Source of the DNA: Oikopleura dioica
Taxonomy: Eukaryota; Animalia; Chordata
Direction: 5' to 3'
Length of the DNA: 64,000 nt
NCBI GenBank assembly: GCA_907165135.1
Contig: OU015567.1
Span: 13,454,001 to 13,518,000, forward strand
Under the pieces are notes generated by a model. The model saw only the letters and a program-made list of their open reading frames with translations. It was not told the DNA's origin and ran no database searches. Shown piece after piece: positions 20,820-63,055 of the stretch (positions are counted from its first letter, which is position 1; each line of letters opens with the position of its first letter). The position numbers were made by a program, and so were the translations under genes.

Positions 20820-23599
20820 TTGAGCCAACGCACGAAATCGGACGAAGCGATGGATCGTAACCGCTCATCCAAATCGGTCTTTCCGGCTCATATAAATCTC
20901 AATTTACAAGCACTTCCGGGTAAAAATAGAAAAACCATCCCCAAAGCGTACGAACATTTCCTAGCCCAGAATTTGCCGGAGTCTATCAGACGCGCTAGGC
21001 GCCAGGGCAGCTTCGAAATAAGACAAGAAGAAAGGGCGGCTGCGAATAATTATGGGAATCGTGTAACGCTGCAGAATAGAGGGATGAATAGAATCTTTCA
21101 GAACTCGCCCCAGGATGGATCTCGTGGACGGGATCGCAACCAAAATCGCTCGTACCAGGAGCCTTACAGGAAGTTGTAAACGTCTCGAAATTTAGCCTCA
21201 AAACATGAGATAATAAAATTCTTTGACATGTACGTTTTTGAACTTTTTGAAGACGAGAGCCGAGCCGCAGCAGGAGCGACAAGTCATTTGAAGGATTTAC
21301 TAGAAACGGGATCTTTTTCATCCGCACGTGGCGGAAATCAAAAAGTCTTGATGAATCGTTTTAGTGATCCCAAGCATAGATTCAATGAGCCATCGAGTCG
21401 CGGCGGAGCGAGTTATGAGCTCAATCAGAATCAGAGACTGGGCCAGGCGGGACTTGTTGATGCCGCTTTCGTTGTTAGAGATAGAAGATCAGCCTACCAG
21501 GACGATTTGCGAGATGATGGCTCTACAATGAGCTCAACCCGTCCATCAAGAACTTCCTCCCGTCCTGGCTCTTCAAAGAGAGCTGCCAGAGAATCCAATC
21601 AAGATCGGAAACTGCTGGAAAGAATCGATCTTGAAAATCGTCAACTAGAGAAAGTCCCGGATCTGCGACAGGAAGAATCGCTCAAGCTTATCAACTTGCA
21701 GCAGAATAGAATAACCGACCTGACGAATCTGAAGTATTTGTGGAACCTGGTGTTTTTGGATCTCTATGACAATGAGATTTCCAATCTCTTTCACTTACAG
21801 CCCCTTATCAATCTACGAGTACTGATGCTCGGAAAGAACAAAATCGACCGAATCCACGGACTCGATACTTTAACCAAACTGGACGTACTGGATATGCACT
21901 CGAACAATATCTCGGATCTCTCCGGTCTGGCGCAACAGTCATCTTTGCGCGTGCTCAACTTGGCGGGGAATAAAATTTCACTGGTTCATGGCCTCCAAAA
22001 GCTCGGTAGGTGGGCTTTCCTCAACCGTGAAACTAATCATTTTCTCTGAAGAGAGTCTGGCCGAGCTGAACGTGAGCCGTAATCAAGTAGTCAGTGTCCA
22101 AGATTTAGAGAAGCTGCCATTTTTGGCTTCAGGAAAGCGAGATAGAAATTGTCATCGAAATATTTTCATCTGTGTCTCCCTTGTCAAGTGTACCTCAGTT
22201 ACAACAAAATCGAAAGTGGGAAGACATTTGGTGTTTAGGCGACTCGACAAGTTTAAAAGAACTAACCTTAGACGGAAATCCACTGACATTTGAATCATCC
22301 TACCGCTACACAATTCTAGCATCAGGAGTCAAACTCAAAATGCTTGATACCAAAAGGGTTTCAGACGAAGAGAGAAGAATGGCCTCTAGTTTGTTGAAGA
22401 AAGAATTAGAAAAGAAGAGAAATGAGGAGCTTGCTAAGAAGAGGAGTCAACGAAGACAACTCGCAATAGATAATGTTGTCAGGTAGGGTGACCACAGCTT
22501 GAGATTTTATTCAACTAAGATCTGCTTGTTGGTGACCCGGTCAAAAGATTATGGAAAAGCGAAGATCGTAAAAATGCGGCGGAAATGGTCAGTCCCGATT
22601 TGAGCCCCTTTTCGGGTCAGGTCACCGTCCTTGATATCGGCGACTCTCATTTGATCGAATTCTGGCCGGAGAGCAAAACAATACGCTTCTTCGGAACTGA
22701 ATCAATACAGCACGCGGATAAAGTCCTAGGAAAGAGGTCAACAAGGAGCAAATTGAATATTTGAAGCTATGATTGCTTGACCCGATTAAAAGCGTCGGCT
22801 AACTTGGGAAGCCAGATTCTCTCGATTCATCTTCGCTACGCTGCAGGTGCCGCGTTTTTAGACAAGTTACCGAGGCTAAGATCGAAGATACCCGGCTTGG
22901 ATTCAATTACGTTCGGGTAAATAATTTTTAGCTCACTTTTCAGTGTGTGTTTGAAAATAATTATTTGTAGTTGAATCACGCTTAATTTTGACGGTTATTT
23001 TTGATTTTCCCTAAACACCGGACGATTATAAATAATTCCCCTAAATCTACTAGCAGTCGTGTATTTTGGAAACTACGTGACAGAATTTCAAGAAAAGAGG
23101 CGCGGGAGTTCTCCGGTTGAGTAGTTTCAAAAGTTTTCTTCAGTGAATGCGGCCTCTCAAAAATGGTATTGTTCGATAAGCTCGTTGATGTCAACATTTC
23201 CCATCTCAACGTTGACCAGTGTAATCCAGTCACAAAACTCAAATTTTGGCGACTTTACGTGATCCAAAAGGTGAAAGAATTATCTGTTAGTAAAGAGCTA
23301 GAATCAAACATTTTTGGTGAGTCGGTAAAATATGATATTCTTAGTCACCGAGCATAAAGAAAATCAACGGATCGACAAAAACCGAGGCGGAAATCCAAAA
23401 AGCTACCACCCTCTTCACTTCCATCAATAGCTGCCAGTCAATTTTACCCACTTACCGACATGAAATTAGAGATTTGAAGCTAGAAGAAAACGATAATAAG
23501 AAGTTTAGGAAGGGCACACTAAATTTTGACACTGAAATCAAGGAGGACCACTGTATAACATTAGCCCGGTTGTTCACACCAGGGTTCCAATTTTGCTGA
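20820..23599 (+). CDS. LRRC49: Leucine-rich repeat protein 49-like; start codon uncertain
   Basis: LRR run LDLYDNEI...LRVLMLGKNKI...LDVLDMHSNNI, LRRcap TLDGNP, KRVSDEERRMAS and KINGS...ATTLF follow LRRC49. The stop codon lies inside the inserted MITE. Confidence 0.85.
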
Positions 23600-24594
23600 G
23601 CGATGGAGTGGATTTTGAGCGGAGTGGAGCGTGAGCGGAGTGGATCCACTCCACTCCACTCGCTCAGCCTATATTTTTAGTGTCCACTCATTCGCTCCAC
23701 TCCACTCCAACCTGTAAAATCGACTTTGGAGTGGATTTTGAGTGGATTTTGAGCGGATGGAGTGGATTTTTGTCTTTAGCGCCCCTTTTCTCGTATTCTG
23801 ATTGGAGACCGAGTTTTGTCTATTTTTAAATGAAGAATCAAATTCTCTCAGGGGATAATCAAGAGAATAAATCAATGATATAATATCAGGATCAACCTTT
23901 AATTTAGGACCGACTTCTTCATAAAAGTTTGATGATCAGACCCTCTCTAAAACCCTTTTTATCTCGAAAAATGAAAGGCTTGCTCACGGCGTGCAAAGAA
24001 GACTTCGGTTTCTGTCTGCTCGTGGGGGCTCGACCTTTTTCAACCTCTCTTCTTTACGCCCCCTCTTTCTCTTCCTTTCACCCCCCTCTTTCTTAAAACC
24101 CCTTTTTCAGAAAAGGAAAAGCTTGCTCACGGCGTGCAAAGATGACTTCGGTTTCTGTCTGCTCGTGGGGGTCGAACCTTTTTTGTTCCTCTGCTCTCTT
24201 TCAACCTTTTTAATAATTAAACCCTCCCCCCAACGACCAATTATAATGGATTTAAGAATAAAACGACCCTGTTTGTTCCTCAGTACCTCCTGAACTTCAA
24301 GGTTGCTAAGAATATATCTTCCATTAGTCAATGCTTCCGAGAATATAATTGTAAATTGACTAAAAATATGAGAATGAAATCGTTTAAAAAAAAACCCGGC
24401 CTCTCGACCCTTTTTTGAGTGTATTGTACGGTGCATGAAATGCAAAAAATTTTTTTTTAATCGCTCAAACTTCCCTAAAAATCCGCTCAAAATCCACTCC
24501 GCTCACCCACTCCACTCGCTCAACCATTTTTTTTGGGCATCCACTCATCTCTCCACTCCACTCCAAAATTTTTTCGGCCAAAATTGGAACCCTG
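23580..24594. mobile_element. hAT-type MITE, 1015 bp
   Basis: TIR CAGGGTTCCAATTTTG / CAAAATTGGAACCCTG; 8-bp TSD GTTCACAC (23572-79, 24595-602); subterminal CCACT/AGTGG arrays; internal ~65-bp duplication at 23978 and 24121. Confidence 0.93.
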
Positions 24595-25264
24595 GTTCAC
24601 ACCTGCTCTAATCACCAATTAGCCTTGTTGCACCTACAAATACCCCGTTTTTATATATAAGTAGACGCACTTAGAATTCTTGAGATTCCTAACAGCGATT
24701 ATCCGCGACCCGCAGGGCATGTTCTATCTCAATTTGCGCGTTCGCTCAATTTCAAACAACTCCGAGAAATTAAAATAGATCTTCTAATTTTCTACCCCCA
24801 CTTGACCTATTTTTTCGAAAAGAGATTTCAAAAGAAGCTGCATGCAGAGTTCACACTTTCACCGGAAGGTGGCATTTTTTATGTGCCCGCTTTCTTAGCG
24901 CCCTGCCAGGCGAGTGCGAACAGCTGGAGCTGCGGCGCCAGAGGTTGGCCGATGCCCTGCCCGCCGTTTTCCTGTCAGTTGTGCGCGATTGTACCTCGCA
25001 GTTGCTCGACGTAAACTGGGACGAGTACACTCACGTGACCATTCAAAGCAAGTGAAGCCTCTCCAGTACAAAAGACACTCGCCATCGTTTTATTCCGACC
25101 ATCTTTTGTCAATCATCACTTTTTTCGCCGCTGCGAGCAGAGAGATTTTTTACTTCTATTTTTCTACACTTCTAAAACTATCTATTTTCCTAAAAAAAGA
25201 GAGCTAACCAGAAATTCTACTTCAGAAACAGAGATCGAAATCGAAAAAATAAGAAAATAGAAAA

Positions 25265-30796: not shown

Positions 30797-31557
30797 GTTA
30801 ACATCCACCTGTACATAATGCGCAAAGTTACAAAAAATGTAAATGTATGTTCTATTAATGGTTTATTGCACTATCTCCAGTTCAACTTCTCAAACAAACC
30901 AGTCGTGCTTCACTCCTCGTCTTCTGAACTCTTTACTGTACTTCAAACTGTACTAGTTATATTTGAGCCGAAATGTTACTACAAATTGTTACTGCGACAC
31001 AAACACATTTAGTCTTCTCAAAAACAGCATTGTGAACCAATTTCTAATACTTATTGGAATTAAAAAAGCCTCAAAGTTGATACCACAAAATACAGCATAA
31101 ACAATTGAAATTCGTGTTTTGTTATTGCAAGTTTTGAAGTTAAAACGCGTTTTCTGCAAGATGGCAATCACCGAAATCTGGCTTTTAATTATAACATTCA
31201 TTTCGATGGAACAAATCTCTTTTAGTTTCCAAAAAAATCAATTTCTAATCCGTCAATTCCACTGATATTCAAAATCGAATAACTCGTTTTCCTCCTGACT
31301 CGTTTACGAAAAAACCTAACCATTGTGCTTCTACCTTTTTATTTTCAGTTTTATTTTATTTCTTTTTAGTTTTATTCTTATCTCAGATATTTCTTCTTCT
31401 GTAGCAGCTCTTCCCAAATCATTTATGTTCGACTCAAAGTAAAATAAAGATATTCCAAGTGAACCAAAAACGCTTTGAAGATTTTAACGTAAAAGTCTTG
31501 AAGTTTGGTCTTTATTGATATCATTCAACATTTCACATGATGAAAATGCAGGGCAAA

Positions 31558-32698: not shown

Positions 32699-32831
32699 AT
32701 TGTTCTACCATCAAAATCAGCGCTGGAATTTTTATTCTGTTCTCCACTTATTTATTTTATTTTTGTACTTAATATTTATTTAATAAAACAACTTGCTGAT
32801 CTTCGATAAGATCAGTAAGTTTTGGCTGCTC

Positions 32832-33255
32832 CTATTTTCAGGAGTTCGAAAAATTTGGAGTAAATTTTTTGTAGTCATTTTTCATTTTAATTTCAAAAGT
32901 GGAGATTTTTTTTTCTGGAACTGTTTCTCAAAAAATTTCATTGATTCCATTTGGACCAAAAATAACACCTTGTTCAGACCGATTTTTAAGGGTGTTAGAG
33001 TAATAATTAAGGGTATCTGACTGGGGCAAAATAAAGCTTAGGCCCCGAGCCAGGTTTTTACCGGGGTTTTAGGGGGCCGGGAGGCCCTTAACACCCTTGA
33101 AAATGGGTTTGAACAAGGTGTTATTTTTGGTCCAAATGGAATCGATGAAATTTTTTGAGAAACAGTTCCAGAAAAAAAAATCTCCACTTTTGAAATTAAA
33201 ATGAAAAAATGACTACAAAAATTCTATTCCAAATTTTTCAAACTCCTGAAAATAG
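32832..33255. mobile_element. Foldback (palindromic) MITE-like element, intergenic
   Basis: ~190-bp inverted arms (CTATTTTCAGGAGTT... / ...AACTCCTGAAAATAG). No clear TSD, so the ends are approximate. Confidence 0.7.
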
Positions 33256-33356
33256 TAGTTGCCGTAAGTTTTCTATTTTTATAACCACAGCCTCCTAGGG
33301 CATTTTTAGGAAAACAAAATGCTCTAGAAGCGAATGATTTTGAATAACAGTTAAGT

Positions 33357-36511: not shown

Positions 36512-36547
36512 TCTAAAAAAGACAGAAATACAATCTTTGAATTGCAT

Positions 36548-39483
36548 CTAGCTTGATTTCTCGACAATCTGCTCTGGCGCAGTTGGAGGCCAATCAAGGT
36601 GGACGTTAGTGACATCAAGTCCGACAATGTCACATTCGCATCCGAGAATTTCAGAAACATTTGGCTTCGTTCTTCCGAAATCTCCATGAACAAATTCCTA
36701 GAAAAGAAAGTCATCCACTGACTATGAGCTTTTTCGTACCTTAATATAAGTGCCCGCTTGAGTAAGCAAATCGATATAGAACCAGTTTTCTGATCTACCT
36801 TCCCATCTCTTCCCTTCTGCTCTATAAAGATGAGTTAAAGGAAATAGAGCTGGGCGTCAAATTTACTTATGAATCGTTCTTGGTCTCGTATCATTGTTTC
36901 TCCGATGCAATACTCGGATAGGAGTCTTTTGCTAAATAAAAGATAAGAAGTAGGACAAATATTTCTTTCTACCTTCAATACTACTTCGCTCATTCTTAAT
37001 TTTTCCAAATCTTCCTCTGTAATCTTTCTTTCAGCGTAGCAAAACGCCCGATACTCTTTTTTCTTGTCCACTTCTCCTTCCAAAAGCGTTTTGCATCCAC
37101 TTTTTCCAATAATGCAAACGTCTTTTATTTTTAAGGACCCCCCCGTCAACAATTTTCGAAAAATCTATTTTCGGAATTTCAAAATTTTGACCCCGGAAAT
37201 GGATTCTACAGGTCAAAAAACGATTTTGAGGCTTCATTTTTTGGGGGTCTATCTCGACTCTAACACCCTCAAAATCGCGTTTGGAAATCGGACTTTTTGA
37301 CGAAAAATGACGAAAAAGTCCCAATTTTGCTTAAATTTTAGACTTTTATTGGTCAAAAAGTGCTCCTTACAAGTTTTTATGATAAATTTAACTTCCAGGC
37401 ACACTCAGAAGCCAAAATATGGCTGCTTTGAGATTTTCGATTTTTTGAGGAAAATTGTTGACGGGGGGGTCCTTAAATCGGAGCTTTTATTCACTTCTGC
37501 GGCTAGAATCTCCGCACAACTGCTTGTCAACAGCTTGCGGGGCTTCAACAGCTCCACAATGAAGGGTCTTCCATTTCCTGAAAATAGAATCCAACTCAAC
37601 ATTCAAGCACGAATTAAACTTACCGAGAGTTCTAACATCTACATCTTCTCTCCCTGCCGAAGTCAGGATTCCTCTCTGCGCCCCAGTCGCTTTTACAAAG
37701 GGCGCTGCGATAATTTCCTCGACAGAAGTTTCACTGTAATGTCTTTTGCCATCAACGAGCCAGGGAGTTTGAGGGAGCGTCCTTGAATATTTCTGATATC
37801 TTCCAGCGATGTAGATCGGCGAGTGGATCGTTTCGACTGTCAGTTTGTGCGACGGAGAAAGAGATGAAAGGTACTCGCCGAGACTGAGCAAGTCGGAAGG
37901 CGACAGAATGTTTAAAGTCTGCGAAACAGTACTGGCATTGATCGTTGGCGGCAGATTCGTAACCTCTGGGCTGCACGATTGGCAAAAAAATTTGGATTTT
38001 TCCAACCAACTGCCAATCCAATCCAACCCAAATTTTCCCAATCCAACCAAATTCCAATCCAATTCCAATTCCAATTGGAATTTGGCTGTCCAATTGGAAA
38101 ACTCGTGCCAATTGGAAGCAAGATTCCAATTGCCGATTGGTCCGCGAAAAAAATCGGATTCTAATTGGAAAAATCAGTTTTTTTAATGAGTTCATTTAAA
38201 ATAATCCTTTAAAATTTACAAACGAGGGAATTTTTAAAGCAAATCGGCATCGGGCATTCGGGGAAAAAGCGTTCGGCCGAGCATTCGGAGCTAAGCCCCT
38301 AAAATTTGGCCAGGCAAGAGCGGGCATTTCGGACATTTGGGCAATATGGGCACTTTCGGGCAATTCGGCGCTTTCGGGCAGTTTGGCAAGCCCTCGCCGA
38401 AGAAAATTCCAAAATTTTGCTAATTTTTGCATTCTTTACAACTATTTTTGCCCTCTTGCTCCTCTAACTGAATCAATAGTCCCTCGAAACTTATTTTTCT
38501 AGCCCTTATCTATCGAAAATCCCACCATCAGTCCAATTCTTTTGACTTAAAGATCGAAAATTATTGCCCAACTGGTCGTTTGAGCCACTGTTTCAAGCAT
38601 AATCTGGCATTTCCGCATGGAAAGAGGTGCTTCGATCCAATCATTTTGCCAATTTACCAATTGGCGACCAGTTGCCAATTGGACCCCCATTTTCCAATTG
38701 GAAGGGCTGTCCAATTGGACAGACCCTGATTTTCCCGCCTTTTTTCCAACCAATTTACCAATCCAATCCAATTGGAATTGGAAACCAATTGGATTCCAAT
38801 CCAATTGTGCAGCCCTGCTCTTCTTCTTCCTTTTCTTTCTTCGCTTTTTTGCCCCATTTCTTTTTCTTTCCTCCTCCAGCTCTCGTTTTGTAAATCGCCT
38901 CCAATTTATAGGAAATTTCGTTTGATAAGCTGGGGTTGTTGATCAATCCAGTGATGAATTGAGACTCGAATTCTTCGCATAAGAATTTGGGCGAAACCTT
39001 CAGCTCGCTTTCGGCATTGATGAAGACGTTTTCAAGCAGATTATTGCAGCACATCGTTTTGAGAATTTCTTTCAGGTTGATGTTGTCTTTCAAAGCTTGA
39101 AAAAAGTATGGGAAGGATAATTTCTGGTGTTATTAGCGAGCTTTTCCTGGTAAAACAACATCTGAAACTTCCTGCTTTATCGAATAATAAACAATGTTCT
39201 CGACGAGTGGCATTATCGACGGAACTGTAATCAACATTTGAAAGTCCCTAACGACATGTTCTTTCTCCAGCGGCCAGTTTTCTACCGACTTTCTGATTTC
39301 TTCTTTGTACTCAGCAAACCTCGACCGGGTCAGAAAGCCAAAACACATGATACATGTTCGACTTGGGTCAACGAATTTTCTCAATTTTTCATTTTCAACA
39401 GGAAGATTTTCCACTGTTTCGTAAAATTTCGTGAAATCATTGCAGCCGAGAAGACGATTCGCGCAAACTCCGCAGATATTCAT
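36548..39483 (-). CDS. PUS10: tRNA pseudouridine synthase Pus10; two introns coincide with MITEs
   Basis: IAGRYQKYSRTLPQTPW, SAGREDVDVRTLGNGRPF, QKTPIRVLHRR, TQAGTYIKEFVHGDFGRTKPN, DWPP. Confidence 0.93.
37135..37472. mobile_element. TTAA-specific MITE with GG termini (Kolobok-like), 338 bp, inside the PUS10 coding sequence
   Basis: Perfect 23-bp TIR GGACCCCCCCGTCAACAATTTTC; TTAA on both sides (37131-34, 37473-76). Confidence 0.9.
37969..38814. mobile_element. MITE (~846 bp) with CCAAT-array subterminal repeats, interrupting the PUS10 coding sequence
   Basis: TIR GGCTGCAC(G/A)ATTGG; CTG on both flanks (3-bp TSD, Harbinger-like), or alternatively a hAT-like CAGGG end without TSD. ~200-bp inverted CCAATT/CCAATC arrays and a central GGGCA repeat. 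Confidence 0.85.
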
Positions 39484-39554: not shown

Positions 39555-39862
39555 CGTTTTCCTACTGATGGGGTGTTTGATAGCGAAATTTCCATCAGAG
39601 CGCTGTGACGAATCAGAGTGCCTATCTCAAGAGGGCCTGAGTTAGGCTAGTGAGGCCAGTTACCATACATTTTCTTGGTCGGCGCTCTGATTCGTCAGAT
39701 GTTGGAAAAACGGGTTACGTGAATCTTATGGAAAATTCGAGAAAAATTAAACGGACGAATCAGAGCGCCCGTCAGTGGGATGTCTGGTTACTAGCCTTAC
39801 AAGCCCAACCCAGGCTCCGATGAGATTTTTTCCGCTATCCAACACCCCATCAGTAGCAAACG
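39555..39862. mobile_element. Degenerate foldback element in a divergent promoter region
   Basis: CTACTGATGGGGTGTT / AACACCCCATCAGTAG inverted pair plus inner GCGCTCTGATTCGTC / GACGAATCAGAGCGC. No TSD seen. Confidence 0.55.
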
Positions 39863-40972: not shown

Positions 40973-43741
<2,769 letters not shown>

Positions 43742-44584
43742 TTTCAAGTCTAAAAACAGACTCTTTAGAAAGATAAGCCAGGGCTTACAGGTGTAGTAGT
43801 GCGCCACCAAGTTGAAATTCTCTTTGAAGTCCTTATATAGAAACTCAAAAAAGCTCAGAAAAACTGAAAAACTGAGAGAAGACAGATTCCCATCAAACAG
43901 CCACGCCCACGAGTCTGTCCCAGAATCGCCTCAATACAAGGTCATCTCGTGATTTCCCAATTTCTTTCAAGGATCAATACCACTCAATTCTCTCTGATCG
44001 CCCGATCAATAGGAAGGCTTTTCTGAAGAAAGGGGCTCTTTCGAAAATGGCAAAAAGATTGGTGTTTGCTCAAGAATGCGGCGTTTTTGCTGATCCTGAT
44101 CGGACGAGTTTGCGCTCAGGGGCGTTTCGAAACGGCCGTTTTTATTTTCTATAAATTTCACAAGGCGACCTCGTTACCTTATTTTTGGACCGTTCCGTTC
44201 CGCGTAGTTTATCGACCGACTCAGAGTTAGGGCTCATAAAATTATATTTTCGAAAATCATAATTGCTTTTGAATAATGTTCGTATGTAAAAAGAATAACC
44301 ACCACTCATTTGATATTAACAATCATTTTTTGTTAAGTTTTCGTAGTCACACGGATCTTCCCAAAACCATAGACAGATATCTGTTATAACAGAAATTTTG
44401 TCACTAGAGTGATTTCTCTTCGAACTGTACTTTTTCCTTCTTTCCAGTATTTTCTCGCTCGGTCATTGGCTAGGGCGGATGGTAAAATTGACGCAACAGA
44501 AATGGAAAGCTTCTCTCCAAATCTCCAGGCCATGTTTTCAGACTCAAAAAATAGAGAAAATCGAACGAGAAAGCCGCGAAGAAA

Positions 44585-45276
44585 ATGCTGAAGCGTAGTT
44601 CAAAATTTCTCACCAGTAAGTTATTTCTTCGACGGTATATTTATTTATTCAAATTTCTTAAATTCAGTGCTCGGAGCGCCGATTTTGACTTGTTCAGCTT
44701 CAACTTCTTCTCAGCTGCTATCAGAGTATCCATTATACGGACCTGAATCGATCATGGCTCGGAAGGCGCATGGAACTTGCCCGAAAGGAGTCCAGCTGGT
44801 TATTTCTTGCCTTGAGTTTTCAGCTTTCCTTTGCTTTAGAATTTGCGATGGGGTTGCGATCAAAGCCTGGCAGATCGAATCACGTGTTACAATCGCCACT
44901 GGGCCGAGAATTTCGGATATTGGCTCGACACGGACTTTTATGATTTTGCCATCAAACAGGTGGATTGCTCCTTCTTCACCCCTTATTTTATGTTTCTTTC
45001 CAGACTGAGCCGATTACGTTTTACGATTCGGTCACTGGAAAGCCGCTTTTCAAGGCGCCCATCGGACGAACGATGAGTGGATTTCTAAAAGAATCGCAAG
45101 ATCACGGCTGGCCAAGTTTCAGAGACGAAGAAGTCGTTTGGGAGAATGTCAGGTGCTTGGAAAATGGGGAGGCTGTTTCGCTAGAAGGCTCGCATCTGGG
45201 ACACAATTTGCCTGATAACAGGGGAAATCGATACTGCATTAATTTGGTCTCAGTTGCTGGCAAGCCCGCTGAATAA
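44585..45276 (+). CDS. Divergent methionine sulfoxide reductase B (SelR)-like protein, copy 1, possible transit peptide
   Basis: HGWPSF, HLGHNL and RYCIN motifs. The Zn-binding CxxC is absent (FYDSVTGKPLF). Start inferred. Confidence 0.7.
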
Positions 45277-45330
45277 TTCTGAAAACTTCATCCCATTCGT
45301 TCTCAAAATCTTTCCTCTGCTTCCTTTAGA

Positions 45331-46439
45331 ATGTCTCAATACCCAATTGTCGGTGATGAAAGCATCATGAGCCAGAAAAAGCACGGCACTTCTGATGCTC
45401 CTGTTCAGAAAGTTAGTAATAAAAATTTGATTCTTTTTAATGAAATTTTTAGGAATTGCGATGGAAATGCAACTATGATACCGCAGATTCCGTTTGCAAC
45501 TTCAATCGCCATTACGCCGAGCATTCTGGTTATTTTCTTGAAACTAGCTTTTTGAACGAGACAAAAGAGGGCACCGAAATAACCTTTTACGATTCAGGTA
45601 GTTTATTTTGAGATATTCTTCAGAGACATTGATTTCAAGTGACTGGAAAGCCTCTTTTCATCGCTCCAAAAGGCAGAACCAAGGTCTCGGATTTGGTGTG
45701 ACCCGCTGTGCGCAAAAATGAGTCCCCTGAAATGGCGCACAAAATGATGTGCGCAGCATTTGCGGATCACAGAAAAGGCTGTGATTCAGTCGAGCACACC
45801 GACAAATTTGCTGTGGCCGATCACAGCTCTCAATCACAGAATTCGTGTGATCCAAAAATAAGGGATGGGAATTCAGGCTTTCATAACGAGGGATTGTTGA
45901 ATCATCTCAAAGGTCGAAGCCGCGTTATCGGACATTCCTATCATCCGCCCCTGGTATGAATAGTTTTCCTAATGAAATTCAGTGATAAATTCATGGGTCG
46001 GGCGAAAGGAATTCTGGATCACAAAAAATCTGTGATCCAAATAAGACTAAATTTCAATTCTGTGATCGAGCATCGATCACAGTTCCTCTGTGATCGAATA
46101 AACCTGCGCACATCTTATTGTGCGCCTTTTCAGGAGACATGTTTTCGTGCACAGCGGATCACACCAAATCCGAGACCTTGGGCAGAACTTGGAAAGAATT
46201 CGTCGACGAAAGCAAGGCGCATGGATGGCCGAGCTTCAGAGACGAAGAAGTCGTCTGGGAAAACGTCAGGACTTTAAAAGATGGCGAAGCGGTTTCTCTT
46301 AGTGAGTGGAATCTTCCTCTTTTCGGGTTTACTGTTATTTATAGCGGGCACTCACTTGGGCCACAATCTGCCAGACAAGAAGGGGAATCGATACTGCATC
46401 AATCTCTGCTCTGTTGCTGGACAACCTAAAGAAACATGA
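45331..46439 (+). CDS. MsrB-like protein, copy 2, interrupted by a MITE
   Basis: Tandem paralogue with the same motifs. The frame is intact on both sides of the insertion (KGRT|WKEF). Confidence 0.65.
45680..46180. mobile_element. hAT-type MITE, 501 bp
   Basis: TIR CAAGGTCTCGGATTTGGTGTGA / TCACACCAAATCCGAGACCTTG; 8-bp TSD GGCAGAAC (45672-79, 46181-88); internal GATCAC/GTGATC repeats. Confidence 0.93.
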
Positions 46440-46697
46440 TTCGTGGTCCCTTTTCTGTACATTTCTCTTCTCTTCAAACAATTCTATCAAGTGTTTCCAT
46501 GTCTTACCCAAATCTCTCCTTTCGCAGGTTATCCATTCTATCACTGAAAACACACATTCCAATTTCCTTCCAGTAATTTTAGTATTAGAGCATGCTAGCA
46601 ACAGTAATTTCTCTTTCAAGTTCCAAAAAGGTTCGCAATTGCAATTGAAAAACTCTTCTTTATCTTATTCGAATTTTCCTATTTTCTTGCAATCAGA

Positions 46698-47883
46698 ATG
46701 TCATACGGCAAAGTGCTAAGAAATTCCGTCGCTAAAAGAGTTCTCGATCTTCGCTCGGACACATTTACACTTCCTTCCGCCGCGATGCGCGCCAGAATGG
46801 CCGAGGCCATTTGTGGCGATGATGTTTACAAAGAAGACAGGACGATTATTGAGCTTGAATCTCGCCTTGCTGAGCTAACTGGACATGAAGGCGCATTGTT
46901 CGTCCTAACATGCACAATGGCTAATTTCCTTGGCTTGGCTGCAACTTGCAACCGCGGGGAAGAGGTTTTATGTGGCGATATGAGCCACATCGGGCTTTAT
47001 GAACAGTCGAATGTTTCTCAATTCACGGGTATTGGAATGCGTCAAGTAAAGAATCAGCCTGACGGCACAGTCTGCCTTGAAGATGTCCTTAGAAGAGGAT
47101 ACTTTTCAAACGATGACTTTCACATGTCGCATAGCAAAGATAGGATTTTGAGCAGTTTTCGAGTACTATGATTGTTTTTTGAATGTCTGAAAATCCTTTT
47201 TTACTGATTTGCGTTGAGAATACCCATAATTTCACCGGTGGAAAGCCGCTTTCTCTTGAATATCTTCAGGATCTTCGAAAACTATCATCGGAAAATGGCT
47301 GCAATGTTCACATGGATGGAGCTAGACTTGTAAACGCATCGATAGGCACCGGAATAACGCTGAAAGATTACTGCTCGCTAGTAGATACTGCAACCATGTG
47401 CTTTACGAAAGGAATGGGCTGTCCTTTCGGAGCAGCGCTTGTTGGAAACGAAGACGTGATTCAAAAGGCGAGGAGAATGAGAAAGGCAATCGGTGGTCAA
47501 TGGAGACAAGGAGGAATCGCGGCGGCGGCTGTTCTGGAAAGTTTAGACGACTTGTCTCCGATCGAAAATGATCATGAAATGGCGAAAGTATGGGCTTCTG
47601 CCATTCCAGCGCTCTCAAAGAAAATATCTGTGGATGCGCCACAAACAAATATCGTCATCTTCAAGTGCCAAGATGAAACGTCTGCGCTGGAGATTATTGA
47701 AAAGATGGCGCATGGCGAATTATCCGGTAATGATACAAATCATTAATAAGCTTCCTAAATTAAGCGTTCGTAGTTCTTCTTCAGCAAGGCGCTAACCCAG
47801 AAGATGTTCGTGCCGTCTTTCACAGATCAGCCGACTACTCGTTAATTTCCGAGGCAGTTGAAAAGTTGCAAAGTTTAATTTAG
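46698..47883 (+). CDS. THA1: Low-specificity L-threonine aldolase (PLP-dependent), 3 exons
   Basis: DLRSDTFT, GDDVYKED, CVENTHN, HMDGARL, CFTKG (PLP lysine), RKAIGGQWRQGG. Confidence 0.93.
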
Positions 47884-52380: not shown

Positions 52381-54079
52381 AAATCAACAACTGTGCAAAT
52401 AACTTTTTAACTCTTCATAAATTTCCCGAAAAACTGGAAAATTCTGAAAAGCTGTCACTTTTTGTTTGACTACCCGTGCCAATATTCCGCTCGCCAGCAT
52501 CGTTCTGCAATCTTTCAAGCTTGGGTCAACAAAAGAAAAATGGCGTACTGAAGAGCGAAATTGTATTTGCGCTCAGAACTTTACCAACTGTAAATTTATA
52601 TTTATAACGAAATCGGATAAGAATTTTCAAAAAATTATTAAGAAAGACACACTTGAAATCACTAATTTGATATTTTTAAACTTTAAATTCCTATTAGTCA
52701 TCAACTGTTACTGTAATTCATTACAGTAACGTGAAGGTCTCTTCCGATCGACTCAGCCTTCCGATGACCCTTTTCTACACGAATCTGACTTTTCCAAAGG
52801 AATTACAGTGTATTATGTCCATAGAAATCTTCTGATTTCTTGATGAAAAGACAAAAAGAAAAAGCTGATCGACAAAACCAACAAAAGGAAATGCCAATTC
52901 AATTATCACAAAGACAATCTGATATTCGATTATGTACCGTACAATTATCATAAAAACGAACGCTATTTGCGTACCCCTGCGCGATAATACTTCTTCTCCA
53001 AATTTTCCAATCGATTTCGTTGTTGCTCGTTTAGCTTCTTCATTGCTAGAAATTTCTCATCAAAAACAACTCATCATCAAATAAACACAAAATAAGTGAA
53101 ATTCACAGCATTATTACCTTCATATTTTTGCTTAAAATTTTCATCCTCATCTTTGCCCATTTTTTCTTCTGGTATCTCTTTCACACTTTCTCCAAAAGAT
53201 AACTTTTAAAATTAAAATCTAACGCAGCGGCCAAACACTTGTATTTCTGAAGCGCTTTTGAGCTTCCGAAAATGTCGCTTCCACGCGCCCCAGGGCGATC
53301 CGGATTCTCCCGCACTTATATTTCTTTTTGGAAGAAAAAGTCAATTCACGGACGCAATTCAAAGAATTCTGGATTTGGGCGTTTTTACGCTCTTTTTATG
53401 CTTAATCGTTTCTTGTGTGTAAAACATGGTTGAGCCGCTCCTCACAATTGGGCTGTCATAGAAACCAAATTTCTTTGAATCTGTCAAACAGCACAAATTA
53501 TCATCAAAGATCAAAATAATTACATCAGAAGATAAAACACAAACTAAAATCATTCGGAGAGAGGAAAACTCTAAAATTTCTTGCCGTTTTATGATAATGA
53601 TTGAAAGACCATAACTCGCTCTTGGATAAGATTGGATGGGAATAAATTCTAGTTTGCCTAAGGTGCGTAAGTGCGGTCATCACCCAGTAGGAATTCCAGA
53701 GCGGCTACATGTGCCGTTTTGGCCAATACTGAGCTTAGTGTAAAAAAATTCTTGAGTGTGTAATTGCCCAGTCTTCTGACCAGTGACTGTGTGATAAGGA
53801 CGAGAGGAACAATTTTATTTACAGAAAAGAACGATTATTTATAAAACGCAAATTCGACATCATATCCGACAATACCCGGACACCAGACGCGGCTACGTCG
53901 ACACGTAAGAAGTCGAGCAAGTCCGATTAGAGTCCAAAGAAAGGAAGTCAATTAATCTTCACCTCTTCTCGAGTATCGTCTCTTCTAAAGTCATTTTCAT
54001 TGTAGCCATACATACGGTAACTCGTGAATAGTATTTCTAAAAAATTTGGTTTATAAACTAAGAATAAGGAGCCACTTTC

Positions 54080-54198
54080 GCTTAGCGTCATACCGCGTAG
54101 AATAAACCAGTTCTCGTCCGATCACTGAAGTCAAACTACGACGGGCGGGGTTAGTACTTACATGGGTGACCGGTTGGGAATACCTCGTGCGCTAAGCA
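54080..54198 (+). rRNA. 5S rRNA
   Basis: 119 nt; terminal helix GCTTAGC/GCTAAGC; internal promoter GGTTAGTACTTACATGGGTGACCGGTTGGGAATACC matches 5S; followed by a T-run terminator. Confidence 0.92.
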
Positions 54199-54278
54199 TT
54201 TTGACTTTTTTGGAAATGTCAAAGCTTTTTTCATATTATCGTAAACTTGTTTAACTTTGATGATTTTATGACTGCCAT

Positions 54279-54353
54279 CAGGGATGTACATTCGCAAAAA
54301 TTCCCGCATTTTGCGCTGTTTTGCGGATTTTGCGCTGCGAATGTACATCACTG
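54279..54353. mobile_element. Miniature hAT-type MITE, 75 bp
   Basis: TIR CAG(G/T)GATGTACATTCGCA; 8-bp TSD ACTGCCAT. Absent from the mirror arm. Confidence 0.9.
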
Positions 54354-54554
54354 ACTGCCATCATAGTGAACAGTTTGATTCTGCAATAAAGTCTTTTTGG
54401 TATCTTATGTATCATAAGTTATGATTCTAATCTGTGTAGGGCAGCATAGTGGGAGAAGCATTTAGCGCCATCTAGCGCATATTCTTCTCAGAGAGATCAA
54501 AATTAGGAACGCGCAGCGACAAAACGACCTCGAAATCAGGCACCTCGGGTCTTC

Positions 54555-54645
54555 ACTCATCCCATTTTTGAGTCCGATTTCGATTGTCTAACAGGTAAGA
54601 ATCGAATCCACGCCTCCTTCTCTCCCATCCCTCTCGCCTCTCACA
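54555..54645 (+). ncRNA. Spliced-leader (SL) RNA gene; 40-nt exon 54555-54594, donor GTAAGA; 3' end approximate
   Basis: Exon sequence matches the O. dioica SL as I recall it, followed by a strong 5' splice site and located downstream of 5S. Confidence 0.9.
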
Positions 54646-54962
54646 AATAACTTGATTCATTCAACGTAAAAGTGAATTCACTTTTCTGCTGAATCGTATG
54701 AGTCCCACTTCCGATTCCTAATCGTCGGCCTCTAAACGGAAGAATTTGGCCGCATCTCAATCGCGAATTAGTACTTCTCGGTCAAGTACATAATGTAGCA
54801 ATTTGCTAGTCTTGAAAACACGTGTTAAAAGACTCACCACGGTAGATGCGGTATAAGAGGGATGTCGAGATAATCGCCACTTAGTACGCATTATGTGAAA
54901 TCAAACGTCTTTTAACACGTGTTTTCAAGACTAGCAATGTACTTGACCGAGAAGTACTAATT

Positions 54963-55204
54963 CGGGGAAACGCTCGGTTCGTGTACCAATTGGTATTCGA
55001 ATACCAAATCTTCTCAAAAATTCAAAATTTGGTGCACTAAAAGAGAGCCTATGCGCTTCGCGCCTGTCTTGAAGGAGACTTTGGTAGTGATTTAGTAGCA
55101 ATTTCACGGAAAGAGACCTTTCTGATCAAAAACCTTGGATTTGGAAAATCAAAAATTGGTATTCGAATACCAAAAAATTTTGGTACACGAATCGAGCGTC
55201 CCCG
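54963..55204. mobile_element. 242-bp MITE-like insertion that breaks the palindrome symmetry
   Basis: Imperfect TIR CGGGGA..ACGCTCG.TTCGTGTACC; flanked by CTAATT direct repeats; internal palindrome TTGGTATTCGAATACCAA occurs twice. Confidence 0.75.
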
Positions 55205-55329
55205 CTAATTCGCGATTGAGATGCGGCCAAATTCTTCCGTTTAGAGGCCGACGATTAGAAATCGGAAGTGGGACTCATACGATTCAGCAGAAAAGTGAAT
55301 TCACTTTTACGTTGAATTAATCAAGTTAT

Positions 55330-55421
55330 TTGTGAGAGGCGAGAGGGATGGGAGAGAAGGAGGCGTGGATTCGATTCTTACCTGTTAGACAATCGAAATC
55401 GGACTCAAAAATGGGATGAGT
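55330..55421 (-). ncRNA. SL RNA gene, second copy (exon 55421-55382)
   Basis: Reverse complement of the first copy. Confidence 0.9.
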
Positions 55422-55676
55422 GAAGACCCGAGGTGCCTGATTTCGAGGTCGTTTTGTCGCTGCGCGTTCCTAATTTTGATCTCTCTGAGAACAATATGCG
55501 CTAGATGGCGCTAAATGCTTCTCCCACTATGCTGCCCTACACAGATTAGAATCATAAGATAACAAAAGACTTTATTGCAGAATCAAACTGTTCACTATGA
55601 TGGCAGTCATAAATCATCAAAGTTAAACGAGTTTACGATAAAATGAAAAAGCTTTGACATTTCCAAAATGTCAAAA

Positions 55677-55795
55677 TGCTTAGCGCACGAGGTATTCCCA
55701 ACCGGTCACCCATGTAAGTACTAACCCCGCCCGTCGTAGTTTGACTTCAGTGATCGGACGAGAACTGGTTTATTCTACGCGGTATGACGCTAAGC
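55677..55795 (-). rRNA. 5S rRNA, second copy
   Basis: Reverse complement appears identical to 54080-54198. Confidence 0.92.
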
Positions 55796-57610
55796 GAAAG
55801 TGGCTCCTTATTCTTAGTTTATAAACCAAATTTTTAGAAATACTATTCACGAGTTACCGTATGTATCGCAAATAAGATCGTCTGATAGTGCCTACCAAAT
55901 GAAAATGACTTTAAAAGAGACGATACTCGAGAAGAGGTGAAGATTAATTGACTTCCTTTCTTTGAACTCTAATCGGACTTGCTCGACTTCTTACGTGTCG
56001 ACTGAAGAGCCGCATCTGTTGTCCGGTATTGTCGGATGTAATAGCCATTTTGCATTTCGTAAAGATTCGTTTTATTTTAATGAAAAAGATGTTCCTTAAA
56101 ATACAGTAGTTACTGTATTTCGCGTTCTCTTCTTGAACTTGACATCTTGCAAAATGCTAACTAACTCAATAACCAGTATAATAACTCGCAATCCAGACAG
56201 CTCGACGATTCCAATTGCCTAGATACAGTCGCACTTACAGTACAAAAAAACGAATAGAGAGAACTTTCTTTGAAAGTTGAATCGAGTATATTGGTGATAT
56301 CACGCGATTTGACTCAGTGAGCGTGTTCTTTTCTCAGATTTAGTCCTGCATAATGTCGGTTGAATTAAAAGGTAAGTTTATTCATTATAGTTCTCTCTTT
56401 ATTCATTATCTTTTTATTCAAATTTTGAAAGAGAAAGCTGAAGAGCATCCAGAGTCAGAGAAATTTATTCACTCACTGATTTACATAATTTTTATGAAGA
56501 GATTTTGAACGACTAGCGAGACTCTTGATAATAATAAGTATTTCACATAATAAACAATAAAAATCTCATTCTGAGTCCCGTAACAATGATACTCCTTTTG
56601 GTAAGTTAAAAGCGGCCGGTAACATTTACCAGCGACTTGTTTTATCGTAGATTCTTGGGCTGGCGTTCTCCAACTTTATTTACAAGCGAAATTTGCGAAA
56701 AGAAATGAAACCTACTATTACTTTGATTCAGTAAAAAATATCAACAATTGTCATAAATTATTCAAATATTTCATTCTAACAATTTTTTCAGTGTCGAGTC
56801 GACACTGTTGACCTTTTTTGTCCTGAATTTGGAAATAATGTTTTTTTGGAAGGTCTTTGTTACCTAAAATTCTGAGGGAATAGGACTGTCATGTAATAAA
56901 TAAGAGAGCCATACATTCTTTGATTTTGATTTTAATTAAATGCAAGCGTAAGCACTGTAACAGTCGTCGAGTGAATCTGTAGCAGTAGGGGAAACTAGTG
57001 TGAGTTGACAATCTCATTACGCGTCAACAAAATCACTAGTCTTCCATTCCGTCTACAAGATATTTGCAAGTCCTCGATCTCTCTATCCCTGTTTCACTGT
57101 ATGATCCGCTTTCCGGTCAAAGGCGCCTAATTATGGTGTCTCTCAAAAAAGCGATGCCGTAGTTCTCGAGAAAATGCCTGGATCGAAAGTGAAAGTGTCG
57201 CTCAAACCGGGGCCGGAGCGTCTCTGGCTCTCAAGAATGCTTTGGCTAATTCATCCCAAATGCTCATGAATAATTGACTGTTGCGATTCCCCTCGACAGT
57301 AGCGCCTTTAACATGCTTCTAGCTGGCGCTAGAATCGAGAAAAATCAATTAAAGCAGCACCTGCAAGTGAGAAAGAGTGATTCGACACTTCCTTGAGTGA
57401 TTAAAATTGATTCGAGCAGGAAAGGGTCAAATATTCATTCACAACAAAAGCACCGCTCGGTCGATACTCCCAGTTCAAAGCATGAATAAAACAGATACCT
57501 CCAAAATGATCGACCCATCGAACAACAGAAACGAAAAGAACTGATCTTGGATATTTGGATATTTATTATTTACAATTTGTTCAAAATCGTCTTTTCTTTT
57601 CGAACGATTT

Positions 57611-59457: not shown

Positions 59458-60006
59458 CGTTTATTTTTTGGTAATTATTTTCAACCTCGAATGTTTTTAA
59501 TTTTTTTCAGGCAGAATAAGTTTATCGGCAATTAGGGAGCGCCACCTGCCGGGCCTGTAATGTAATGTTATATGGAAGGTTGATCCATGATGAGCCTAAA
59601 GCTCTTTTATGTTCGAGAGGGATTATCCGTCAGTTTTTTCTTTTGTCAGAACACATCAGCTCATTGACATGTCCTTTTGACCCTTTCTTCGTAATTTTCA
59701 ATCGAAAAGATGAATTGAAATCAACAACGACATGATTCTTCCATGACTCAGTATTGAGATTTGCTTTATTTGCGAAAAACGATTCTGGCGCAATTTTACT
59801 TAACAGCTCTTAATTCTTGCTACAACGAAACAATGGACCCTTCGTCATTGACACATTGAACCTAATCAGCGTTTCGCGCTTCTGTATTTTTCTGGCTTGT
59901 ACTCGTCTGGACGAGACCTGGTGATTGATACGCCTTCAGTATTTAACCACACTCTTCCAGGGCATCATCTTCATATCAAAAAGAAGCAAGAGAAACGAAA
60001 TAAAAA

Positions 60007-61159
60007 ATGGATAATCGAATAAAAATCTTCTTCGAAGATTCCGACGACGACATCGAAAAGACCTTCGAAAAACACAGCCAAGAAATGCGAGCAAGAATGG
60101 ACTCGGCTTTTGGATCAGGTAGATATCTGAAAGTTATTTGCTCATAAAAATAAGAAGTAAAGACCTAGGGTTCGAATAAATCTGCATCAGATATCCGGTC
60201 TTAGCTTTTATGGCTAGTTTTCTAATTGTTGTACCAATGTCGTGTACCGGCTTTTCTACAAGCTCCCTAAGATACTTACCATAACCTGCAATAATCCTAA
60301 GCGCGTTAACAATAATAGCTCCTAAAGGAAAATCCGTCAAAGAGGCCTTGCTACTCAAAAACTGATTCTTTTTTCCTTTCTGACCTTCTTTCCAAGCTCG
60401 AAGCGATTCCCTTTTCGACCGCGCCCAGACAGGAAGCTCATCGAATTCACTCTTCCAGCGATCCAACCCTTTTAAAGAAGCCGACGACTTTTTCAGTAAC
60501 TCAAGAAGCCTTTTTAACTCAAACGATCGTGGCTCCCCGCCATCCATCAGCACTATGATGCCCTTGGGAGCGTCGAGCAGGATCGGGTTCCCAATGGACT
60601 CCATCGGAAGTGCGCCTGCTAACGATATCAAATGGACAGATGAGACACACTGGGAAAAGGTAAGCAAAAGACTCAAGCAGAGCTTAGGCTAAAGAATGAC
60701 ACTCAAGTCCGCGCTGAAAGCGCAGGTGACCCTTTTCAAATCGAAGAAAGTTTAGATTCTAATCTTTAGACTTTAAGCTCTGGCACTTTCGCCGCTGAAA
60801 TTTAAGACAGTGCTTTTAAGTTTGTGACACCTCAACCCTAACTTATTCTCAGTAAATGATACGATATCTTTAAGGAAATTCCTCTCAACTCCCAACACTC
60901 TTATTCAAACATTGGCGTTAAATGCAAAGAAAACTTCCTCGAAATCGGCGCCTCAGAAGAGGTCGTTGAAATGAACAACGGAAAGCAGTCCATGAGCAAA
61001 AGCCACTTTAAAACCTCATTTTCGATTCCCGCTGGAACGAATAAGAAGACGATTCAAGCTGAAACTACTGGAGCTAAAATCATCGTCCGTGGAGAAGTTG
61101 AGAAGAAAAGTGAAGCCAAAGAAGAGAAAGCTACGGAGATCCCCATTCAATTTGAATAA
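60007..61159 (+). CDS. Small heat-shock protein (alpha-crystallin domain)-like, 3 exons (~60007-60118, 60397-60660, 60873-61159)
   Basis: Spliced WEK|EIPLNSQHSYSNIGVKCKENFLEIGASEE...FKTSFSIPAG...IIVRG follows the ACD strand pattern. Confidence 0.6.
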
Positions 61160-61510
61160 AATGCTAAAGCTATCAAATGATAAACTTTGCACTACTGAAA
61201 AAAAGAACCAAATGCTTTTCATTCAATAAAAAACGTGTACTACAGCTGCAGTAATCTTCTAAAGATCAGTAATCCATCCTTCGGGATTAGATCACGTTCT
61301 CATTTTAATGTTCCATAAAAATCGCTGTGCTTGTGGATCTTATGCCACCCTCTCTGCGCATTATGCTCTGGTGCAAATTTCAAAAACGAGGTTTATTCGA
61401 CGAGAAACAAACCAAGAGTAAATAATTTTGGAATTTATTCTTCAAAATCGGCCGATCTGTGAAAAATACAACATATTAAAGGCAGTGAATAACTGAGTAA
61501 AGGAAAGAAC

Positions 61511-63055
61511 TTAGTTTTTGTTTTCAACAAGGGGCTGTCGGTTTTCAGCTTCGTTGTCCAACTTCATCTTTTTAACGCCAGTGGACCCGAAGCCAGCTTC
61601 GCCGCGGACGGTCTCTTCAAGCTTTTCGCTAGACTCGACGAGAACTGGCATCCAGATGCGTTCCAGAATGAATTGAGCGATTCGGTCGCCTTTTTCGACC
61701 TATCCGTAGGGGAAATCACTAATAATTAAGCTTTTTTTTTCTGGCTTAGAAGGGTGAGGTTATAATACAGATTTAGAATCCCCAGAAGCTGGGGATCATT
61801 TTGACTATTGATAGTGGGGGGTCAACTCGTACCCTGAGGGCATTTAGGCACCTCTGAAGTCCCAAAATCCGGCCAACTTCGGAAATTGGAATTTTTGAAC
61901 GCCCAGACCGCCCCTTTAGAGCCAGCGACTGTACTAGAATTGTAGCCCAGGCTCTGACGGTCATTTTGAGATATAGAAAAGTACTGAGACCCGGGGGTTC
62001 CTGAGGAGCTAGAGGCTCTTGAAGTTCGGGAACTCGACAAAAATTGAGTACTTTTTCACAAAAAGTACACCATTTGTGTCACAAATGCCTCCAAAAGACT
62101 CTTTATTTATGTTTCTTCATTAAAAAATGTTAAAGGAATCACTTGGGGTCATCCGAGGTCAGATCGGGTCACTCATGACAGTTTTCCAAATTTTTCATAA
62201 TTTCTGACCTAGAGTGACCTCGGATGACCCCAAATGATTCCTTTAACATTTTTTAATGAAGAAACATAGATAAAGAGTCTTTTGGAGGCATTTGTGACAC
62301 AAATGGTGTACTTTTTGTGAAAAAGTACTCAATTTTTGTCGAGTTCCCGAACTTCAAGAGCCTCTAGCTCCTCAGGAACCCCCGGGTCTCAGTACTTTTC
62401 TATATCTCAAAATGACCGTCAGAGCCTGGGCTACAATTCTAGTACAGTCGCTGGCTCTAAAGGGGCGGTCTGGGCGTTCAAAAATTCCAATTTCCGAAGT
62501 TGGCCGGATTTTGGGACTTCAGAGGTGCCTAAATGCCCTCAGGGTACGAGTTGACCCCCCACTATCAATAGTCAAAATGATCCCCAGCTTCTGGGGATTC
62601 TAAATCTGTATTATAACCTCACCCTTCTAAGCCAGAAAAAAAGCTTAATTATTAGTGATTTCCCCTACCTATCCGACGGTAAAAGAAGCTGCTCGGGTTA
62701 GTGAAATTTACCTTGAATTCCTCTTCGCCAAAGTTGAAGAGAATGACGCCAACGTTTCCTCGATAGTCCTGGTCAACGACACCTGCGCCTACATCAATGC
62801 CTTTCTTGTAAGCAAGGCCCGATCGTGGGGCGATTCGGCCGTAGCAACCATCGGGAAGCGCAACCTTAAAATTGTTACAAATTTGAAGAAAAATCCAATT
62901 CGTACCTGAATATCGGTCTTGATCAGAGCTCGACCCTTGGCAGGAACAATCTTCTCCTCGGCAGAGTAGAGATCCAGTCCAGCGGCGTAATCAGATCCCC
63001 GAGAAGGAGTAGTGGCGTTTTCGGAGAGCTTGTGGAATTTCATTTCAATCGACAT
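61511..63055 (-). CDS. DUT: dUTP diphosphatase (3 exons)
   Basis: [52 protein letters not shown] (motifs 1-5). Confidence 0.96.
61707..62667. mobile_element. Palindromic hAT-type MITE, 961 bp, at the dUTPase intron-2 acceptor
   Basis: ~455-bp near-perfect inverted arms starting TAGGGGAAATCAC; 8-bp TSD CCTATCCG (61699-706, 62668-675). Confidence 0.95.

Follow-up and report, generated by a model that had tools for sequence, protein, structure and literature searches.

How new spliceosomal introns originate is a long-standing question, recent gains in animals being few and segregating ones rarer still. A gene-dense stretch of 64,000 nucleotides from Oikopleura dioica (assembly GCA_907165135.1, contig OU015567.1, positions 13,454,001 to 13,518,000 of the forward strand; hereafter the window, with positions counted from its first letter) raises this question in a concrete form, namely whether miniature inverted-repeat transposable elements (MITEs) lying in conserved genes could be on their way to becoming introns. 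A first-pass annotation of the window had proposed exactly this for six insertions bounded by terminal inverted repeats (TIRs) and assigned to LRRC49, PUS10 (twice), GDH, MsrB-2 and dUTPase. The observation itself is largely confirmed, and its interpretation as intron birth is plausible but unproven. Six families of non-autonomous cut-and-paste DNA transposons are represented in the window by one independent insertion each, most of them recent; four of the families are hAT-like, one is TTAA-targeting and one is unclassified. Four of the insertions lie in coding exons (two in PUS10, one in GDH and one in MsrB-2), one lies on the acceptor of an older dUTPase intron and one at or after the end of the frame of a leucine-rich-repeat (LRR) gene. 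Judged from the DNA alone, the exonic elements may be candidate introns in the course of being born.

The elements were located by an inverted-repeat scan of 23-63 kb combined with direct reading, and their boundaries were set by script; all six are present at the positions claimed for them. Four are framed by exact 8-bp target-site duplications (TSDs), namely the element of the LRR gene (23580-24594, 1015 nt; TSD GTTCACAC at 23572-79 and 24595-602; perfect 16-nt TIRs, CAGGGTTCCAATTTTG), that of GDH (42784-43596, 813 nt; TSD CCTTGGTA at 42776-83 and 43597-604; perfect 14-nt TIRs, CAGAGTTCGAAATT), that of MsrB-2 (45680-46180, 501 nt; TSD GGCAGAAC at 45672-79 and 46181-88; perfect 22-nt TIRs, CAAGGTCTCGGATTTGGTGTGA) and that of dUTPase (61707-62667, 961 nt; TSD CCTATCCG at 61699-706 and 62668-75; perfect 32-nt TIRs). 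Besides this 8-bp duplication, all four have TIRs of 14-32 nt that start with YARNG (CAGGG, CAGAG, CAAGG and TAGGG), as is characteristic of hAT transposons and as had been predicted. The sense-strand TSDs of GDH and dUTPase do end in AGG (TACCAAGG and CGGATAGG, respectively). The fifth of the clean duplications that had been announced is the TTAA (37131-34 and 37473-76) around the first PUS10 element (37135-37472, 338 nt), which is accompanied by perfect 23-nt TIRs (GGACCCCCCCGTCAACAATTTTC). The CCC...GGG termini of the piggyBac type are missing from this element, whose ends read GGACCCCCCC...GGGGGGGTCC, and it may belong to a piggyBac-type or to a Kolobok-type superfamily, a choice that we leave open. 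The second PUS10 element (37969-38814, 846 nt; feature span 37966-38817, giving a range of 846-852 nt) has TIRs matching at 13 of 14 positions (GGCTGCACRATTGG), many subterminal CCAATTGG motifs and an ambiguous TSD.

When each element was compared with the window by BLAST, no similarity between elements was found, which agrees with the earlier statement that the families are mutually unrelated, and no second copy of any of the six families was present either in the window or in 16 fetched loci. The open reading frames (ORFs) within the LRR-gene, second PUS10, GDH and MsrB-2 elements contain no Pfam domain, transposase included, and a transposase domain is likewise absent from ten large ORFs elsewhere in the window; the claim that the window lacks a transposase holds on this basis. 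Two more TIR-bounded elements were noted. The first, at 32826-33265, lies between the copies of a 9-bp duplication (GTAAGTTTT), in DNA that is AT-rich and apparently non-coding, and the second, at 39558-39860, lies directly upstream of the PUS10 start codon with no clear TSD.

Do the exonic copies really interrupt coding sequence? In GDH, which is encoded on the minus strand, the answer comes from related lineages, whose sequences lack the element. The peptide GRSE(E/D)(V/I)KREQMEALQ is kept as coding sequence in these relatives, and four of their genomic contigs (L005, L006, L009 and L010) carry, at the corresponding position after ...(A/G)ATCGAAA, a short intron of low sequence conservation, which is spliced out in the metatranscriptome contigs L007 and L008 (...ATCGAAA^TTGGCCGATCTG..., the caret marking here and below a splice boundary). 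The conserved peptide and the position of this short intron together place the MITE in exon 1. In the window the same intron, older than the MITE, is of the GT-AG type and 49 nt long (42769-42721), and the element sits 7 nt ahead of it. The intervening tail of exon 1 (GTCGAAA, 42770-42776) would become a micro-exon if the MITE were spliced as a GC-AG intron. A model in which the MITE falls exactly on the donor of an older GDH intron of 103 nt (junction EDTK^RSEDQ) fits the spacing of human GDH better; it is ruled out by the peptide that the relatives encode and by the short intron that they splice after ...ATCGAAA. Further along the same gene, ...DDGSSQ and VISGYRAQ... are separated by a GT-AG intron of 40 nt (42520-42559, minus strand) that the genomic contigs L005 and L006 lack, and locus lengths suggest its absence from other related-lineage contigs as well. 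Both of its ends read CCAG^GT, a duplication-like pattern that marks a lineage-specific intron gain.

Both PUS10 elements (minus strand) interrupt continuous coding DNA as well, since uninterrupted ORFs run across both sites in a related lineage. The exon lying between the two elements matches human PUS10 (2v9k, E = 1e-17), and a word-indexed protein search recovered, from two Tara Oceans metagenome contigs (L003 and L004), an ORF of 230 amino acids (P0151) that is 87% identical over this exon. In L003 this single ORF is continuous from ...KKWGKKAKVTEEKPKSLPPTINAST... across the site of the second element, which sits in a K/E-rich linker exon, and a second frame of the same contig (...NKNQDLKIKDVCII...) reads unbroken over the site of the first. 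At this first site more distant PUS10 homologues are colinear too, the segment ...DLKIKDVCII... being uninterrupted in them as in L003. One detail of the first-pass annotation did not survive this comparison. For the second element a probable 3-bp TSD had been put forward; however, exact removal of the element with 3 bp (849 nt) shifts the frame, though the ancestral exon is continuous, whereas the frame is kept when 848, 851 or 854 nt are removed. The boundaries or the TSD of this element must therefore differ from that model, and a 2-bp AG duplication near CAGGGCTGCAC...GTGCAGCCCAG would fit. In the same gene, the intron after ...DVDVRTL (37570-37616) measures 47 nt in the window versus about 96 nt in L003, and is apparently absent from the more distant L001, also a Tara Oceans metagenome contig, whose ORF aligns through the junction. 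This intron is a presence/absence difference among related larvacean lineages.

MsrB-2 is one of two tandem MsrB-like genes on the plus strand (44667-45276 and 45330-46430). Its paralogue MsrB-1, 700 bp upstream, matches the SelR domain below threshold. The frame of MsrB-2 at the empty site reads VTGKPLFIAPKGRTWKEFVDESKAHGWPSF and that of MsrB-1, of equal length, reads VTGKPLFKAPIGRTMSGFLKESQDHGWPSF; the two are colinear, so that the element splits real codons.

A second line of evidence, on the age of these insertions, comes from sequencing reads. Read mapping covered positions 41300-47299 with three RNA runs (X4, X5 and X1) and one DNA run (X30), the latter from a different study and about 96-97% identical. 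Empty-site alleles in another individual, which the first-pass annotation had proposed to look for, are found in this DNA run in exact form for both genes in that interval. One contig joins 42775 to 43597 at GDH (821 nt skipped) and another joins 45671 to 46181 at MsrB-2 (509 nt skipped); in each of them 8 letters fit both sides, and hence exactly one TSD copy is present. Since these contigs keep the neighbouring short introns and reach intergenic DNA, they are genomic and do not derive from spliced RNA. Their depths, 87 and 97, are close to the 96-104 seen in five of the six remaining single-copy contigs listed, and the X30 individual appears homozygous for both empty sites. The GDH and MsrB-2 insertions are young presence/absence polymorphisms. 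Within the two elements the X30 depth rises to about 25-37 times that of the flanks (about 30 times at the ends of the GDH element), which indicates that both families are multi-copy. An internal tandem repeat of the GDH element (43040-43160), made of three units with the core aattcaagaggcttgac, two of which continue as ggcccttcgggccg, reaches a contig depth of about 170,000-750,000 in X30, far above the rest of the element, and must therefore also exist as a very abundant satellite-like repeat.

The same empty sites bear on the possibility that the assembly has misplaced repeats into genes. Nothing specific speaks for such an artefact beyond the fact that the elements are multi-copy in the genome, whereas exact TSDs flank the elements and the empty sites hold exactly one TSD copy, which together are the signature of real transposition and not of misassembly. 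We give this explanation a next to negligible probability.

If the insertions are real and lie in codons, how might the genes tolerate them? In the mechanism that we propose, the TSD and the ends of the element would together supply the splice pairs. In GDH, AAG^GC arises at the upstream junction, where the TSD of the sense strand (TACCAAGG) meets C, the first base of the TIR, and the second TSD copy provides CCAAG^G; this pair delimits a candidate GC-AG intron of 821 nt (43597 to 42777), whose removal would be exact and would be followed by the 7-nt micro-exon. In the second PUS10 element, an in-frame GC-AG candidate of 848 nt (38813 to 37966; CAGG^GC ... CCCAG^A) is nearly coextensive with the element and could be used without loss of frame. 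In MsrB-2, a canonical GT-AG candidate lies inside the TIRs (45684-46174; AAG^GT ... CCGAG^A) and would leave 18 additional nt, that is six residues, unless another Gx-AG pair were used. In the first PUS10 element, the candidate is a GG-AG pair (TTAA^GG ... AAAAG^A), through which 9 nt would be lost and KIKD would be changed to N, a net loss of three residues. Pairing of the TIRs would furthermore juxtapose the two ends of an element in the pre-mRNA. The TIR stem closes the predicted RNA fold in all three elements tested (z-scores of -7.4, -15.1 and -5.1); such folds are expected for any MITE and are compatible with the ends being brought together.

Two considerations lead us to favour removal from the RNA. 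First, four disruptions of conserved genes on one haplotype within 9 kb would represent a heavy load. Second, 4 to 5 of the eight TIR elements noted from the inverted-repeat list of the 40-kb span (the six insertions and those at 32826-33265 and 39558-39860) are in coding sequence, a count by which exons appear to show no obvious depletion of such elements. Null alleles of GDH and PUS10 would be hard to square with this count unless the elements were removed from the RNA. On balance, we find it somewhat probable that the exonic copies are tolerated because the spliceosome takes out all or most of each of them.

Several observations weigh against this view. The three RNA runs match at 90-95% and in part only, 75-96% of the mapped material running into unlike sequence; they derive from a different cryptic lineage, demonstrate no more than expression of the orthologues and, being so diverged, are silent on the inserted alleles. 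Nor did the three protein searches that gave hits return any transcript-derived protein of the carrier lineage, the matches being to related lineages at 45-91% identity under a length filter that excluded full-length annotated proteins. Enumeration of in-frame, stop-free Gx-AG pairs gave 16 to 41 per exonic element; such solutions are plentiful by chance, and their existence is therefore weak evidence for splicing. By the same enumeration, no Gx-AG pair at the boundaries restores the original sequence of the first PUS10 element or of MsrB-2, and the sole same-length Gx-AG pair found for MsrB-2 swaps ten residues. The GDH solution requires, besides its 7-nt micro-exon, an acceptor (GTACCAAG^G) without a pyrimidine tract. 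Finally, a null allele of MsrB-2 could be covered by the neighbouring paralogue, and for two of the four exonic insertions, which another individual lacks, the alleles may be rare, recent and possibly heterozygous.

With GDH and MsrB-2 polymorphic for presence and absence, there is room for young alleles that are unspliced or poorly spliced. The exonic insertions would then be loss-of-function or hypomorphic alleles doomed under purifying selection, seen here because a single individual or haplotype is represented, possibly one from a laboratory line or one that followed a recent burst of transposition, and only the intronic dUTPase copy and the terminal LRR-gene copy would be harmless. The full-depth empty sites in X30 agree with this explanation, as do the tandem paralogue of MsrB-2 and the missing sequence-restoring pairs at the first PUS10 element and MsrB-2; so do the perfect TSDs and TIRs and the dUTPase element arms, 100% identical over 428 nt, which mark the insertions as very recent. 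On the other hand, the explanation has to accept the unusual load just described, GDH and PUS10 have no second copy in the window, and the TSD and TIR make an exact GC-AG pair in GDH. We consider it a serious contender that is nevertheless rather unlikely.

The first PUS10 element and MsrB-2 invite another explanation, as both would be restored exactly only with ends other than Gx-AG, such as GG..AA or AA..AG. Elements might be removed exactly at their TSD boundaries, independently of the terminal dinucleotides, the TIR stem juxtaposing the two TSD copies in a manner likened to the nonconventional introns of Euglena or to the permissive splicing of Fritillaria borealis. The predicted folds of the three tested elements, closed by their TIR stems, are in line with it, and a precedent is reviewed in PMC11282704. 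However, the literature searched describes no such activity in O. dioica, and none of the six elements has the AG/AC ends or the YAY triplet of F. borealis (PMC13326754), and we regard this explanation as highly improbable. A broader proposal, which we rate as improbable, is that any DNA transposon bounded by TIRs is removed from the pre-mRNA of O. dioica at its TSD boundaries or close to them, largely whatever the terminal dinucleotides, by way of the TIR stem. If this were true, exonic MITE insertions of many families would be nearly neutral, the fast intron turnover and the 11-12% of non-canonical introns in this species would stem mainly from such insertions, and intron birth would be observable as segregating alleles in a culturable chordate.

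The preferred reading, removal by the spliceosome through pairs built from the TSD and element ends, concerns the four exonic copies only, and the remaining two call for a narrower statement than the first-pass annotation had made. It had placed all six insertions in coding sequence or at exon junctions and had taken them as intron generators. This stands for both PUS10 copies, GDH and MsrB-2, which lie in coding sequence and interrupt DNA that is uninterrupted in relatives or in another individual. It does not stand for the dUTPase copy, which lies at the acceptor of an older intron that it enlarged, nor for the LRR-gene copy, whose position is terminal in the frame or within the 3' untranslated region (UTR) and which probably requires no splicing.

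In dUTPase (minus strand), the exon ending with ...NFGEEEFK maps to residues 71-121 of the human enzyme (2hqu), its last residue corresponding to 122, and the exon starting with VEKGDRIAQ... begins at human residue 123; the fly enzyme (3ecy) abuts likewise, at 118/119. Between the upstream exon and the first TSD copy there are 43 nt (62669-62711, minus strand; GTAAAT...CACTAAC...GGATAG) that lie outside the insertion, are not a multiple of three in length and have no counterpart in homologous proteins. These 43 nt form an older GT-AG intron, so the element lengthened an intron and created none. The 8-bp target, CGGATAG^G, held the acceptor of this intron and was duplicated by the insertion; the resulting upstream boundary is TAG^GT and the downstream boundary AG^G. 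Of the two acceptor copies, the downstream one would restore the original junction, the intron being merely longer. The sequence at the upstream boundary, TAG^GTAGGG, looks like a recursive splice point, whose use is hypothetical and may be considered only as a possibility. The dUTPase element is also a near-perfect palindrome (61734-62642) with arms of 428 nt that are 100% complementary and a loop of 53 nt, and, if transcribed within the intron, it would fold into a long, perfect double-stranded RNA.

In the LRR gene (plus strand), the ORFs at 21228-22486 carry LRR_4/LRR_9 domains, and LRRC49 is only a putative identity for this gene. The element lies in the last long open frame, 5 codons before the stop, and changes the end of the protein from ...LFTPALITN to ...LFTPGFQFC, each followed by a stop codon. 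If the preceding exon were spliced alternatively, the protein would stop at about 23430 and the element would fall in the 3' UTR. In either position it probably requires no splicing. For the terminal ORF, a putative coding sequence, the searches gave no homologue, Pfam domain or solved structure, and the MITE may lie either in the gene named LRRC49 or in a separate downstream gene. An ORF at 23121-23354 (plus strand), downstream of the LRR domain, bears a weak LRR-cap resemblance to U2 snRNP A' (NPVTKLKFWRLYVIQKV; E = 0.23).

The largest inverted repeat in the span, a palindrome at 53865-56037, was considered as a MITE and ruled out, as it contains two 5S rRNA genes (54080-54198, plus strand, and 55677-55795, minus strand; Rfam) and sequence resembling spliced-leader RNA genes. 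Part of it is presumably the spliced leader sequence of O. dioica, and the spliced-leader-like sequence that it contains matches loose ends of RNA reads. Five reads of the RNA run X4 lying from 45328 onward are preceded by such loose letters, matching the sequence of the 5S palindrome, which suggests that transcripts are trans-spliced to an acceptor where MsrB-2 starts and that the organisation is operon-like. The arrangement of 5S rRNA and spliced leader has been described for O. dioica (PMC8008620).

About 11-12% of O. dioica introns are non-GT/AG (PMC8008620), intron turnover is high (PMC11067885), and a table in a review lists transposon insertion as a mechanism of intron gain in Oikopleura, citing the 2010 genome paper (PMC3443670). 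Beyond this table entry, no description of MITE-born introns specifically in O. dioica was found in the literature searched. Should the exonic MITE alleles prove to be spliced, intron births could be watched in progress in O. dioica, with alleles that carry and lack the insertion within one lineage (GDH and MsrB-2), in an animal for which cultures are established and whose life cycle takes roughly five days (PMC7921577). The efficiency of splicing, the fitness cost and the role of TSD-derived splice sites would then be directly measurable, and the high intron turnover and relaxed splice-site rules of the species would be tied to transposon activity, as has been proposed for Fritillaria. If they are not spliced, the window carries an unexpectedly high load of gene-disrupting insertions, which bears on how the gene models of this assembly are used.

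How do these elements compare with known systems? They resemble ordinary polymorphisms of hAT-type and TTAA-type MITEs in their 8-bp or TTAA duplications, their short TIRs, their non-coding and multi-copy nature and the empty sites found elsewhere; they differ in that ordinary copies usually occupy introns, UTRs and intergenic DNA, whereas four of those described here are in conserved coding exons. Long introns of Drosophila and vertebrates can be removed by recursive splicing at ratchet points, and the dUTPase junction CGGATAG^GTAGGG likewise sets an acceptor beside a donor. This site differs in having been made by a TSD next to a TIR, and its use is purely hypothetical.

A closer parallel in geometry is provided by introner elements, which are found in many aquatic eukaryotes (Gozashti et al. 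2022, PMC9860276; a survey that does not mention Oikopleura or tunicates). In Micromonas and Aureococcus one splice site is derived from the TSD (Huff et al. 2016, as cited in PMC13326754). There, a DNA transposon supplies one splice site and an AG^G-type TSD supplies or regenerates the other, which is also the geometry seen at GDH and dUTPase, and presence/absence polymorphism is common to both. Introners nonetheless belong to single families of high copy number that are specialised for genes and whose splicing is proven, unlike the six unrelated families of ordinary MITEs in the window.

The system nearest in phylogeny is the larvacean Fritillaria borealis, where MITE-derived introns with TIRs and TSDs are known and the spliceosome has adapted to remove them (Henriet et al. 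2019, as related in PMC11282704 and PMC13326754). According to the same texts, about 95% of its introns depart from GT/AG, chiefly in favour of AG/AC and AG/AT with a YAY triplet, a feature linked to duplicated U2AF subunits, and splicing has been demonstrated by RNA. All six junctions in the window lack AG/AC or AG/AT termini with the YAY triplet that precedes the 5' site and recurs at the 3' end. The likeness lies in the shared animal class, in the TIRs and TSDs and in a permissive U2 spliceosome proposed to neutralise insertions of DNA transposons in genes; the difference is that the window presents Gx-AG candidates and a few polymorphic insertions from several families, known from the DNA alone. 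MITE-derived introns being already known in larvaceans through F. borealis, what the present elements would add, if spliced, is that several ordinary MITE families take part and that the alleles segregate in a laboratory chordate.

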